This document shows positions 3,243 to 8,946 of a DNA stretch of 64,000 nucleotides, piece by piece. The DNA is taken from positions 12,586,001 to 12,650,000 of the forward strand of contig CP075494.1 of NCBI GenBank assembly GCA_021613535.1, read 5' to 3'. The notes beneath the pieces are model-generated. The model saw only the letters and a program-made list of their open reading frames with translations. It did not search any database and was not told the origin of the DNA. The number at the start of each line of letters is the position of its first letter. Positions within the stretch are counted from its first letter, which is position 1. The translations under genes were made by a program, and so were the position numbers. This stretch comes from Adineta vaga (lineage: Eukaryota > Animalia > Rotifera).

Positions 3243-4019
3243 TTAACTTACAAAGCACGAAGAATCCTTTTTGCCCAATGTGCACATGCACTTACAATAA
3301 GTCGAATCCGTATTTGCACTGCATCGAGCACAGATACCTTCAATGCAAATAGAAAAATGTTCAGATCAATTATCAATATTTAGAAAGTTACTTACGATTT
3401 GGATAATCACATAAGTAACCAGCCCATCCAAATGCACATTGACATGAAAAAGAAGTAGATGAATGTGACACACAAACGCCACCATTCCTGCATGGATTCA
3501 CAGTACAAGCACTGAGTATAACTGTAAAAAAAATTGATAGTTGGTGTTACTCTTATTAATCATAAAAATAAAACTGTACCGTTGCCTGTTTCACAAAGAA
3601 GACCTGTGAAAGAAGGAGGGCAGTTACACCGAAAACGTCCGCTTGATAAAATTGTACAAGTGCCTCCATTTGAACATAGATTTACTGGACAAATATTAGT
3701 GGATGCTGAAAAATAACCCAAAATAAAATACAAAACAGCAAATAATGCATGAAATCCTACTATCAGGATAATCACATAAATCACCAGCCCATCCAGGAAG
3801 ACATTGACATGACGAATATTGTGTGACGAAAGATCCTCCATTAGCGCAAGGATTTAAATCTATAGTACAAGCAATTCTTAAGTACACATAAGATCGGTAA
3901 CATACACTATCAATCAATCACTTACTCTTATTCATTACCTGTAGGTTAGCATGGTTCTCTTTCCCATTGATCATTAAATAATGAATAAAAAATATTATGA
4001 CCACAAAAGTTGAATGCAT
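3243..4019 (-). CDS. Small secreted protein with three EGF-like repeats and a Cys-rich tail
   Basis: Hydrophobic leader MHSTFVVIIFFIHYL from 4019; EGF exons ~3773-3877, ~3579-3707, ~3396-3521 (CxNGG..CxCxxGxxGxxC); last exon GICARCSANTDSTYCKCMC; first splice junction uncertain. Confidence 0.7.
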
Positions 4020-4590
4020 ATTTTTTTTTTCGTTTTTGATTGTAATCAAAGTAGACCAATGTCTCTGCTATATATCATTGTTTTTACTATAAAACAAAAA
4101 GCAGACTATCTAAACCCGATAAATTGATTTTCATTCTCATATTACATTGTTTTTCAGATTCAATGATCAAAACAAATAAACAAAGTAGAAAGAATCTCTG
4201 GTTTTAATATGCAGTGAAAACTAATTGCTTTTTTTTTATAATCCATCAAGTATTGTATTCCATATTTTTTTTACATTTATATAGATATAGATGCTTCGTT
4301 ACTTCCTTTATTTCATGAAGTACAGCTTGAAAAGTATAATTATACCATTTGTTTTGTCATAAGAAAAAGAATGTTCTTGCTCAACATCGAGTAATACTTC
4401 CCGTTAACTCGTCATTTGAATAAAAATATTACTCAACATTTCAGTTTTCTTGTGCAATGGTTTCATATATATATATTTATTCGTTTTTCAGACAACATTC
4501 GTCTACGAATTTCATTGTATTACCAGTGATTTGCACGATTAAAACGATCGATCAGTTTGAAAACTAGTTTTTCATAAATTTGCACTTTAA

Positions 4591-5118: not shown

Positions 5119-5358
5119 ATGAATTCTTTTTTTATACATATTTTTGTTTTTGTTATAAAGTAATAGACTAAATTATATTCTTGATAATAAATGTAAATGA
5201 AATTTCTTATAAATGATATATTAATTAGTGAATTTCAAGTATATTCAAAAAAGATATTCGGGACAAGGAGAAGGATAAATTTATTTCTCAATTATTTGAT
5301 AAGACTATATAAAAAAAAAGAGTTTTTGTATATAGATAACATGCGTTCCGATTGTTTC

Positions 5359-5830
5359 TTAACGACCACGACGTTTATCATTAGTGGTTGCTTGACGCCA
5401 GGCGTCCCATTCCTGTTGAAAATATTCAAATCAATGAATAGTATCTGAGACATTTCATTTTCTTACTTCAAGTTTTGGACACCATCGTTGAAGACCAGTG
5501 ACTTTATTTATACCCAAAGCTCGTTCACATCTAAAGAAATCTTAAAATAATGTTTCAAAACAATCTTTTATTGTATATCACCGTTCTTCATATTTTTCTT
5601 TTGCTTCTCGACGTTGTTCACGAGGAAATGGGATACCAAAAAGACGCTTTTGTAAGAATTGTTGTGCATCTGGTGCTTCTGAAATTCAATGGAAAGAAAA
5701 ACAACATACTAAATCGATCGTCAATATCAAATTTAAACATACCAAAATCATTTTCATCATCAGCATGAGCAATACGCACAAAACTAATAATAAATAAAGC
5801 ACAAACTAGACCAAATAAGAATTTATTCAT
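5359..5830 (-). CDS. Secreted prepropeptide, paralog A of the EQxREAxxxYEERC family (~100 aa)
   Basis: Exons 5830-5743, 5678-5582, 5530-5467, 5412-5359 splice in frame to MNKFLFGLVCALFIISFVRIAHADDENDFEAPDAQQFLQKR/LFGIPFPREQRREAKEKYEERCERALGINKVTGLQRWCPKLEEWDAWRQATTNDKRRGR*. Confidence 0.85.
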
Positions 5831-6162
5831 TATTCAATGTTGTATGAATATCAAATGATACTATCGAAAAAAAGATTTCCTTTTTCTTCGCAAATGAGAT
5901 TATCTCCTTCAGCACAATGATACAATCGTTTTGTCTCTCAAGTACTGACGATTATTCATCGATTGAAATAGATAATATCTAGATATATTTGTCAACACTT
6001 ATATCAATAATCATCACTTGTCTTTTTCTTCTTCATATTGATTGTAAAAGAATGCTATTCATATAAATATAACAAATATCAAGTGGTAGAGACATGCCGA
6101 TATATTTCGTTTTTGGAAAGAGTTTTACTAAGTTACTTTTTATTTTAGAAAAACAAAACAAA

Positions 6163-6603
6163 ATGAAGACACATTCAATTACTATTCTTATTTGTACTAT
6201 TGTTGTCATGATGATTTTGAACGAAAAATGTGTTCAAGGAGCTGATGACAATCGTTTCGAACAAGGTAAATATATGACTCTCAAGTGATTCTGATTATCT
6301 AAGGAAAAAATTTCGTTGATTTTTGCGTTTGCGCATTTTTGTTTTACTTAAACGCTTCGATCGTATGTATGTGTGTGTGTGTATGTAGACGTAGTCGATG
6401 CTCTCTCGTTTCTTGTCGACAAACGGGTTTATAAACAATTTAAAACCAAATGTGAAGAACAAAAACGTGAAGCCAAAGCAGCCTATGAATCCCGTTGTGA
6501 ACCATCAGTTCATATCAAATTAACAAATAAAAATGCTTCAAAAAAACGTTATTGTCCAGAATTGAAAAATTGGCCATCCTTTCTCAACCATGAAGTTCAA
6601 TAA
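6163..6603 (+). CDS. Secreted prepropeptide B, isoform 1 (signal exon plus module 1)
   Basis: Exon 6163-6265 (signal peptide, phase-1 donor) + 6389-6603: ...FEQDVVDALSFLVDKR/VYKQFKTKCEEQKREAKAAYESRCEPS...RYCPELKNW...*. Confidence 0.85.
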
Positions 6604-6757
6604 TTATCTGACTTTATTTTTCTGTCATAATTATTTTCTATAAAACTTTTATCAATACATATATATATATCTATATTTATATACATTTATCCGGATTTTT
6701 TTTCTTTCTGGTCTTAGTTCGAATAGTCTGTTTGACCCTTTGTTCTGTATACTATAG

Positions 6758-7162
6758 CTCGTTCCAAATCCAATGAATTTCTTCGTCGAAAACGTGGCAT
6801 TTTTCATCCAGGAGTAACTGCATGTGAAGAACAAAAACGTGAAGCTCGAGAAGATTACGGTATGAGAACGATTATTTCTTTGGAAGATCTAAACTCCTTA
6901 TTTTCCAATCACTGTAGAAGAACGATGTGAACCATCAATACCATGGCAACGAGATCGTAAAAGCAATCGTTTCTGTCCAGATATTAATGAATGGAACGAA
7001 TTAGATTCATATGAAATTGGAGAGGGAGGTGGCTTTGATCTTGACACATTGGGAAAATTAATTCCACATAATGTTAGTATGGAAAAAATCATTGGAGGTG
7101 TTGTTGCCGGTATTATCACAGCAGGCGTGGGAGGCAAACGAAGTGTTAATGATGATGAATGA
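6758..7162 (+). CDS. Prepropeptide B alternative terminal module 2
   Basis: Phase-1 acceptor; exons 6758-6859 and 6918-7162: ARSKSNEFLRRKR/GIFHPGVTACEEQKREAREDYEERCEPS...RFCPDINEW...TAGVGGKRSVNDDE*; in-frame stop just upstream, no own ATG or signal. Confidence 0.8.
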
Positions 7163-7412
7163 CAAGCTTCTTTTTTCATATGTTCTATTTGATGATATCT
7201 ATATCTTTTGAATTATCATCTATCTTCTTCCATACATCATTTCTTTTTTGTCTAATCCAGATTATGTCATCAACGCACCAATTTCCTTGTCGTTTTATGT
7301 CATCGTGTTTTTGTTTTTGACTATTCTAGATTGTAAACGTTCTTTTCTTTTAAATATGAATTCATAATCAAGTACATCATCCTTATATTCTATTGTATGT
7401 GTATATGTTTAG

Positions 7413-7824
7413 AATCGGTCTATGCAAATCGATTTTTGAAACGAACATTTTTCCATCCAGGCTCTACAAAATGTGAAGAACAAAAACGTGAAGCACGTGA
7501 AGATTATGGTAATTAATAATTCTTGATTTCAACTACTTCTTTTTCTGTTACTTAGAGGAACGATGTGAACCATCCTTTCCATTATTCCGTAATACGGGAA
7601 CACGTCGATTTTGTCCTGATATTCATAATTGGAAAGAATTGGATAATTATGAAATTGGTGATGGATATGAAAGTCGTGATCCAATAAGTGGAAATAAAAT
7701 CAATACAAATCAAAATAAAGATCGAAGTCGATATAATGTTATTTTAGATCCAGATCGTTCTACAACGGATGTAGGTCTTGATCGTAATGGTGATTATGAT
7801 ACAGAAAAAAACGAACAAGAATAG
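7413..7824 (+). CDS. Prepropeptide B alternative terminal module 3
   Basis: Phase-1 acceptor; exons 7413-7508 and 7556-7824: ESVYANRFLKR/TFFHPGSTKCEEQKREAREDYEERCEPS...RFCPDIHNW...EQE*; same intron position as module 2. Confidence 0.8.
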
Positions 7825-8309
7825 ATGTTAGAATGTATCTTCTGATCGAGCTTGTTTGTGAAATATTTGAAATATAAATATATATATATTCCGTTTGAAT
7901 AAAAATCTTTGCATCGTATCAAAGTAAAAAACGAATGGATATGTCATCGAAGTGTTAGTATATAGTTCTTATCAGCTTTATTCTTTGACATTTGATTTAG
8001 ATAATATCAAAGATAAGTCGATGATAATTCAATTCTTATTCAAGGAAAATTAACAAGGAAACAGTTACAATATGAAAGACGTAGAAGAGAAAGATTGTTA
8101 AATGAGATATCGAAATGAATGATTTCAAGATCCAGGAGAGATGATTTGAATTTGAAAAATGTATTCAGTTCCATGTTAACTAGAAAACTTGCTTAAAATT
8201 AGATATCTTGAAATGAATATTTACTATCGTTGAATCGAAATTAAATACAAATTCTTTGACAATTATATATAAAAATTAGAATACACAATGAATTCGAATA
8301 AGTTCTCTT

Positions 8310-8783
8310 TTACATTCCATTCATCGCATAACGAACAGACAAAGGTAAACCTACCGATTGTCCGTAGATCGATAGCCAAAATAGAAATTTTTTCTTTATA
8401 GATTGATCAGCAACTTGTTTCAATAGATTTTCTGTATGACATGGATGAAGAATAAAGAAAGGTCGATGAAGAATTAAATGTTCTTGTTGTGTAATTGTTT
8501 CATACATATTGGAATTTTTCTTATGTGTGAATATTTTCCAAACATCATCTAATGATAATAATGATCCATCTAAATGACTAATATTGAAATAAAGCACAGG
8601 CACTGAATAACTTTCACTATAGACAACATGAAATTCATATTTTAAACAGTTTTCATCAGTAAATGAATAGATTAAATATGAACCTTTCGATGTTTTTATT
8701 AATTGCCAACGATCATGAATTTGTTGAGATTGTTCATAAAGATCAGAGATACATTGATTAAATTCTTCTAATGTAAAAGACAT
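8310..8783 (-). CDS. ATG10: Ubiquitin-like-conjugating enzyme ATG10
   Basis: YEFHVVYSESYSVPVLYF, ITQQEH...PFFILHPCHT (catalytic HPC), WLSIYG..VGL; intronless; likely start MSFTLEEF. Confidence 0.92.
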   Translation of the reverse strand: MSFTLEEFNQCISDLYEQSQQIHDRWQLIKTSKGSYLIYSFTDENCLKYEFHVVYSESYSVPVLYFNISHLDGSLLSLDDVWKIFTHKKNSNMYETITQQEHLILHRPFFILHPCHTENLLKQVADQSIKKKFLFWLSIYGQSVGLPLSVRYAMNGM

Positions 8784-8946
8784 TTTTTTTTCAAATACTC
8801 TAGAGATCAAAAAGAAACTAGTTGAAGTTTATTTTTGTTTCTGTTTTGTTCTATACACATATGTATGTTTTTTTTTCGCGTGCTTCTTCTCTTACTAATG
8901 AAATGAAGACGTGATACGAGAATGAGAGTGTGCAAATGAGAAGAGA

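Follow-up and report, generated by a model that had tools for sequence, protein, structure and literature searches.

In the CALCA gene, the 5′ exons are common and the last exons are alternatives; each ending carries a stop and a poly(A) site of its own, the proximal poly(A) site being weak. In the immunoglobulin mu heavy chain gene, the choice of 3′ end decides between a secreted and a membrane form, while Drosophila lola and mod(mdg4) combine one common 5′ part with any of many alternative 3′ exon sets, which are tandem duplicates coding for paralogous domains. The combination of a shared signal exon with mutually exclusive peptide-coding endings is also already known: in the Lymnaea stagnalis FMRFamide gene, the signal exon E1 is spliced either to E2 or to E3-E5, and in Haliotis asinina two FMRFamide-related peptide (FaRP) mRNAs have a common signal exon (PMC4208409). 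Here we describe a locus on chromosome 5 of the bdelloid rotifer Adineta vaga (C5:12586001-12650000, a stretch of 64,000 nucleotides hereafter called the window, whose positions are used throughout). The locus is very probably one gene, I4U23_025977, in which splicing connects a single signal-peptide exon with one of three mutually exclusive terminal modules. These modules are tandem duplicates, each of them a complete propeptide and mature-peptide unit with its own stop and 3′ end.

The molluscan FaRP genes resemble this gene in that one signal exon and promoter feed mutually exclusive peptide-coding 3′ parts, but they have two endings encoding arrays of short amidated peptides, whereas the rotifer gene would have three, each encoding one disulfide-looped paralogous peptide, and one of these may contribute a membrane anchor; the genes are unrelated in sequence. 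CALCA is likewise built from a common 5′ part and alternative last exons with their own stops, but its common part comprises three exons including the propeptide, its two endings are only distantly alike, and the choice between them is proven to be tissue-specific. The calcitonin/CGRP-like design proposed in a preliminary description of the window, made from its letters alone, holds as an analogy of design and not of descent. As in the immunoglobulin mu gene, the choice of 3′ end may decide between a soluble product and one with a hydrophobic anchor (predicted for isoform 2), although the rotifer alternatives are whole functional modules rather than just tails. lola and mod(mdg4) differ in encoding nuclear BTB zinc-finger proteins, some of them trans-spliced, whereas the rotifer gene encodes secreted peptides with three endings. 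Particular to the rotifer locus are its three endings, all of them paralogous whole modules, a possible anchor, a bdelloid-wide layout amid very short introns, and an invariant (TG)n tract.

The common first coding exon (6163..6265, plus strand, as are all features of the gene; 103 nt) starts with the ATG at 6163 and encodes the signal peptide followed by eight residues, A-D-D-N-R-F-E-Q, and its last base opens a split codon at the phase-1 donor G|GTAAAT (6265/6266). The signal peptide is hydrophobic (15-residue Kyte-Doolittle mean of 2.84) and carries the cleavage motif V-Q-G|A. The single signal exon with its phase-1 donor, as put forward in the preliminary description, is borne out by the sequence, and the RNA contigs of this exon all stop exactly at 6265. 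Module 1 is a single terminal coding exon (6389..6603) behind the acceptor ..tatgtag|, with its stop TAA at 6601-6603. Module 2 consists of exon a (6758..6859), which encodes a propeptide-like A-x-x-F-L motif, an R-R-K-R site and the start of a Glu-rich helix, and exon b (6918..7162), which encodes a Cys loop, a Gly-rich hydrophobic stretch of 15-16 residues and a short charged tail, and ends in the stop TGA (7160-7162). Module 3 consists of exon a (7413..7508), which is defined by RNA joints and forms part of the annotated protein UJR22950.1, and exon b (7556..7824), which encodes a Cys loop and a long acidic, fast-evolving tail, and ends in the stop TAG (7822-7824). Modules 2 and 3 share an internal intron (6860-6917, 58 nt, and 7509-7555, 47 nt), in phase 1 and in the same codon (Y|E-E-R-C) in both, while module 1 has none, in agreement with the preliminary description. 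The spans spliced out between the signal exon and the three modules are 123, 492 and 1147 nt, amid other introns of 47-64 nt at the locus.

The homology of the modules is evident at the DNA level (63-nt and 19-nt repeats in three copies), and their proteins also align, with a common core of A-x-x-F-L, a basic site, F-H-P-G, a Glu-rich helix, R-C-E-P-S and R-F-C-P-D-I-x-x-W. The earlier claim that modules 2 and 3 have neither an in-frame ATG nor a signal sequence was correct as to the signal, and as to the ATG for module 2, whose only Met is internal (7079); for module 3, an in-frame ATG lies at 7397, 16 nt ahead of the acceptor; it would add five residues that are not signal-like, and it is absent in three of the Adineta-like loci (L020, L021 and L022, below).

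The A. vaga genome searched comprised 100.8 Mb in six contigs. The locus in the window was compared with its ohnolog on A. vaga chromosome 2 (L013, C2:4891500-4899500, minus strand), with four Adineta-like loci from other genomes or metagenomes (L020, L021, L022, and L027 from GCA_905332165.1), and with loci of Didymodactylos carnosus (L029) and Rotaria magnacalcarata (L030). Homologous signal exons ending in F-E-E/Q and G|GT are present in L013, in all four Adineta-like loci and in L029. The Adineta-like loci contain the signal exon and modules 1, 2 and 3 with the same phases and stops, and D. carnosus, which represents the deepest branch among sequenced bdelloids, has one signal exon followed by modules resembling each of the three. 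The proposed three homologous modules at the phase-1 AGs 6389, 6758 and 7413, each with its own stop, are confirmed in the sequence and are not due to chance, as six other loci show these acceptors, phases and stops at the corresponding positions. In D. carnosus, a scan for hydrophobic, ATG-started open reading frames (ORFs) with phase-1 donors revealed no second signal exon between the modules, and none was found in any of seven loci. The chromosome 2 ohnolog, which lacks module 1, combines a single homologous signal exon, ending at a phase-1 donor, with two modules that have phase-1 acceptors and their own stops, and the ohnolog-type locus of R. magnacalcarata has a signal exon and one module. 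In the first module of L013, a one-base slide has taken the internal intron from phase 1 to phase 2 (GATTA|GTAAGT ... AAAG|T; at about 3965-4037 of the reverse complement), leaving D-Y-E-E-R-C unchanged; since the intron slid and the protein was nevertheless kept, the ohnolog fits a working gene.

Purifying selection acts on every module: exon by exon, the ratio of nonsynonymous to synonymous substitution rates (dN/dS) is 0.04-0.54 in all comparisons with unsaturated dS. The homology of the modules, their common intron position and conservation of the layout back to Didymodactylos support the tandem exon duplication proposed earlier. Because single-module relatives (L014, L015 and L016) and the head-to-head neighbour of the gene have signal exons of their own that end in phase 1, the three-module locus arose by duplication of the module without exon 1.

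The public annotations present different parts of this layout. In A. vaga, only the module-3 isoform is annotated, the hypothetical protein I4U23_025977 (UJR22950.1; P0029, 155 amino acids) corresponding exactly to the signal exon and module 3. The D. carnosus model P0036 consists of the signal exon and module 1, the R. magnacalcarata model P0032 of the signal exon and a module of the module-2 type, and the GCA_905332165.1 model P0026 is a fusion in which module 2 runs into module 3 by way of a GT that lies five codons short of the module-2 stop. More than one isoform is listed in none of the compared public annotations of this locus. Where the A. vaga annotation shows one protein of 155 amino acids, the gene very probably gives three, and the models of other bdelloids choose differing single or fused forms.

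Transcript evidence was taken from assembled contigs of four runs from four studies (X1, X4, X19 and X22) placed on 5300-8300, with joints and loose ends listed at a threshold of 1%. The runs are labelled only as guessed RNA; because five different GT..AG introns are missing from the contigs and one A tail is present, the contigs hold RNA-derived sequence. The GT..AG joint 6265>6758 is read in X1 and X19 (two studies) and the GT..AG joint 6265>7413 in X1, X4 and X19 (three studies), so that two of the three junctions named in the preliminary description are found, and modules 2 and 3, for which independent first exons or a lack of transcription had been considered, are both joined in RNA to the donor at 6265. 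The internal joints 6859>6918 and 7508>7556 are read in all four runs, while the hybrid joint from exon a of module 2 to exon b of module 3 (6859>7556) is not seen in the RNA contigs. No other donor into 6758 or 7413, no joint from module to module and no loose end at either acceptor was found in the four runs at this threshold.

For module 1, repeat masking of 6355-6398, which covers the (TG)n tract and the first ten bases of the module-1 exon, hides the joint 6265>6389 from contig placement, and the module-1 contigs begin at 6399, where the mask ends. These contigs have a depth similar to those of modules 2 and 3, the twelve bases 6399-6410 account for all of the depth in the bin 6310-6410, and no contig lies on the unmasked intron before module 1 (6266-6354). 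In X1, X4 and X19, the module-1 contig carries exactly 39 unplaced letters at its left, the number expected from ten exon letters and 29 letters of the signal exon, the same 29 being carried by the X4 module-3 contig. The joint 6265>6389 is therefore likely used. The alternative last-exon choice described earlier thus stands for modules 2 and 3, which are joined directly to the signal exon in RNA, and is likely for module 1. The signal-exon contig depth is 137 in X1 and 113 in X19, close to the sums over the three module contigs of 112 and 108, respectively, although depth is a poor measure.

The three endings differ in how their 3′ ends are marked. The 3′ untranslated region (UTR) of isoform 1 (6604..6694) is defined by X4 and X19 contigs that end at 6689 and 6694, whereas X1 and X22 read through; the only hexamers following module 1 are TATAAA (6639) and AATACA (6654), with no AATAAA. 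A weak poly(A) site near 6689-6694 is probable, as judged from contig ends that carry no A tail. The 3′ UTR of isoform 2 (7163..7330) ends in an X4 contig that terminates at 7330 and is followed by ten A that are not in the genome; this non-templated run gives module 2 a poly(A) site of its own, ahead of module 3, though no canonical poly(A) hexamer was found upstream of 7330. The 3′ UTR of isoform 3 (7825..7935) contains AATAAA at 7898-7903, the sole canonical hexamer, and the module-3 contig ends fall just after it, at 7912 (X1) and 7935 (X4). Of the three poly(A) sites that had been proposed, that of module 2 is marked by an A tail at 7330 in one run and those of modules 1 and 3 by contig ends, accompanied by AATAAA for module 3; contigs that read through also occur.

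Several observations weigh against the reading of one gene with three mutually exclusive endings. At the 5′ end, the RNA contigs of the signal exon span 6185-6265, with starts at 6185-6188 in three runs, 22-25 nt past the ATG, and run X22 has no signal-exon contig; because the contigs start after the ATG, the case for the 5′ end and for including ATG 6163 comes from conservation and the public gene model. No contig reads the joint 6265>6389 directly, the contigs represent whole animals and carry neither strand, true abundance nor tissue specificity, and the three proteins are predicted from sequence and RNA contigs. At the 3′ end, one X22 contig runs unbroken from module 1 (6399) to module 3 (7497) and lacks the module-2 intron, and both spacers between the modules are also crossed by contigs of X1. 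Because these contigs span the spacers, some RNAs are not ended at the proximal sites.

As to the start, no RNA contig was found on 5940-6184 in the four runs, though holes in contig coverage prove nothing, and the use of ATG 6163 is backed by seven conserved signal-peptide ORFs as well as by the public gene model. The start of the contigs after the ATG could reflect a filter, a variant or a real start.

The contigs that cross the spacers, and the missing canonical poly(A) hexamers after modules 1 and 2, would also fit one long primary transcript that always ends after module 3, from which only the 3′ splice site is chosen, later modules forming the 3′ UTR of the earlier ones and proximal poly(A) sites being absent. 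We consider this unlikely, while giving it serious weight, in view of the A tail after 7330 in X4, of the X4 contigs, which leave 6690-6755 uncovered and whose coverage drops after 7330, and of the fact that a contig over two parts does not prove one molecule. The X22 contig 6399-7497 may represent a read-through or partly processed RNA, or an assembly over overlapping transcripts.

A rather improbable alternative is that only modules 2 and 3 are true endings, and that module 1 is a decoy, a relic or a unit with its own start inside 6355-6398. The masking that hides the joint 6265>6389 and the loss of module 1 in the chromosome 2 ohnolog leave room for this, but the frame of module 1, its phase-1 acceptor with 12 invariant bases and its stop are kept in five loci and in Didymodactylos, its dN/dS is 0.06-0.48, it contains no in-frame ATG, and the joint would account exactly for the 39 unplaced letters of three runs. 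Very improbable is the stringing of the modules into a two- or three-domain protein, as in P0026. A. vaga has the same CGAA|GTGTTA site at 7142, in phase 1, but P0026 is a predicted model only, no joint 7142>7413 was found in the four runs at the 1% threshold, and the residues S-V-N-D-D-E past 7142 are conserved as protein in five loci, which argues that the module-2 stop is used. With no joint in RNA, and with conserved residues lost from the protein, the fusion 7142>7413 was rejected. Finally, three separate genes, with modules 2 and 3 having their own first exons or promoters or being trans-spliced to a rotifer spliced leader, are scarcely credible and already largely refuted: bdelloids do trans-splice, and the spacer that precedes module 3 contains a hydrophobic ORF starting at 7180, but both acceptors are joined directly to 6265, the finding of no other joint or loose end at 6758 and 7413 at the 1% threshold disfavours separate first exons and a spliced leader alike, neither module has a conserved in-frame ATG, and no second signal exon was found in any of seven loci.

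If one signal exon feeds three endings, the choice among them would most likely depend on how three acceptors, two proximal 3′ ends and one distal end compete; the proximal ends are presumed weak because no canonical hexamer follows modules 1 and 2, while the distal end is strong and has AATAAA. Within intron 1, two elements stand out from cross-locus comparison. The element GCGTTTGCGCATTT (6325..6338, plus strand) persists in the window, in L022 and L027 and, in part, in L020, amid an otherwise diverged intron. A (TG)n tract (6366..6388, plus strand) abuts the module-1 acceptor (..TGTGTGTATGTAG|), where five loci agree in all of the last 12 intron bases and four retain the TG run. UG-repeat-binding splicing factors provide a general basis for a regulatory reading of such a tract, and the (TG)n tract may act as a brake on the proximal 3′ splice site or otherwise regulate it; conserved at the first acceptor, it is a likely regulator of the choice of ending. 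The long spliced spans have been retained since before the bdelloid radiation amid introns that are otherwise 47-64 nt. The locus offers a compact, conserved test case for competition between acceptors and poly(A) sites, for which the (TG)n tract gives a handle.

After signal cleavage, a probable cut at the conserved K-R or R-R-K-R would give three products: a short basic soluble peptide from module 1, a form held by a Gly-rich hydrophobic segment from module 2, and a soluble form with a long acidic tail from module 3. The basic pair that follows the A-x-x-F-L helix looks like a convertase site. The precursor of the short basic peptide of isoform 1 has about 105 amino acids. The hydrophobic stretch of module 2 has a mean hydropathy of 2.1 over 15 residues and 1.57 over 19 residues, borderline for a membrane span, and the module-2 tail is conserved in L020, L021, L022 and L027; isoform 2 is probably membrane-tethered, as far as its sequence indicates.

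The peptides form a small undescribed family. A family profile search of 1.84 billion representative proteins gave 64 matches, all of them short; the members with a complete N-terminus start with a signal peptide, and the named ones are all from bdelloids. Three Glu, one Arg, two Cys, one Pro and one Trp are invariant across the family, while the first Cys is variable, and because of this the conserved disulfide is assigned to the loop R-C-E...R-x-C-P, which it probably closes. Searches of Pfam with every exon and with full-length relatives gave only noise at E-values up to 10, and profile searches of the PDB with two profiles matched no chain, again at E-values up to 10. AlphaFold2 modelled module 1 with a predicted local distance difference test (pLDDT) score of 55, and the module-3 core, with a wider alignment, with a score of 66. 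Foldseek found no match in the PDB, and the best hit of a wide VIA-align search (Z of 3.7) is noise. A feature search of the ESM Atlas gave scattered peptide-hormone precursors with a best score of 0.82, a weak lead.

A further question concerns gamma-carboxyglutamate (Gla), the product of vitamin K-dependent carboxylation. The A. vaga genome contains exons for an animal-type GGCX homolog (HTTM/GGCX; C3:5567342-5568443), which matches vitamin K-dependent gamma-carboxylase chains in the PDB with an E-value of 7e-29, and a VKOR homolog (C2:4634083-4634484). Gla proteins such as osteocalcin, matrix Gla protein and the transmembrane Gla proteins are small and secreted, with a helical propeptide carrying A-x-x-F-L before a basic site, and the rotifer peptides resemble them in these traits as well as in a Glu-rich helix, a short Cys loop and a possible membrane span in one isoform. 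The rotifer family differs in having neither a Gla-domain match nor a conserved Gla-x3-Gla-x-Cys spacing, and carboxylation of its members is a candidate modification proposed from sequence. This spacing occurs in modules 2 and 3 but is not kept across the family. The Pfam Gla domain (PF00594) matched none of the exons or relatives, nor was any solved Gla chain matched, and a search of the genome with the Pfam Gla profile gave nothing, though its positive control also gave nothing. A literature search on rotifer carboxylase and on bdelloid splicing yielded nothing relevant.

The peptides are possible Gla substrates of the rotifer carboxylase and reasonable first candidates when such substrates are sought. 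In a fuller version of this idea, which we regard as doubtful, the three isoforms would be natural carboxylase substrates that form an invertebrate Gla-like family. Exon 1 would contribute the signal peptide and, with F-E-E/Q, the acidic start of a docking propeptide, and splicing controlled by the UG repeat would decide whether the carboxylated Glu-rich core is released in basic form, tethered to the membrane, or released with a long acidic tail.

Upstream of the gene lies a head-to-head paralog on the minus strand (5359..5830), with four exons (5830-5743, 5678-5582, 5530-5467 and 5412-5359) that include its own phase-1 signal exon. Its three introns are removed in RNA contigs, and its translation is a family member without the first Cys, with P0054 as ortholog. 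The divergent pairing is kept in the A. vaga ohnolog and in other species, with the same head-to-head arrangement in L013, L020, L021, L022 and L030. The spacer of about 330 bp between the two genes (5831..6162) is presumed to hold a shared or divergent promoter together with the 5′ UTR of the plus-strand gene. Downstream, a minus-strand ORF (8310-8810) resembles a neighbour with the Pfam domain Autophagy_act_C (Atg3/Atg10 type) found in L020 and L021; because this type of neighbour stands at the matching place in those loci, synteny around the locus seems to be kept.

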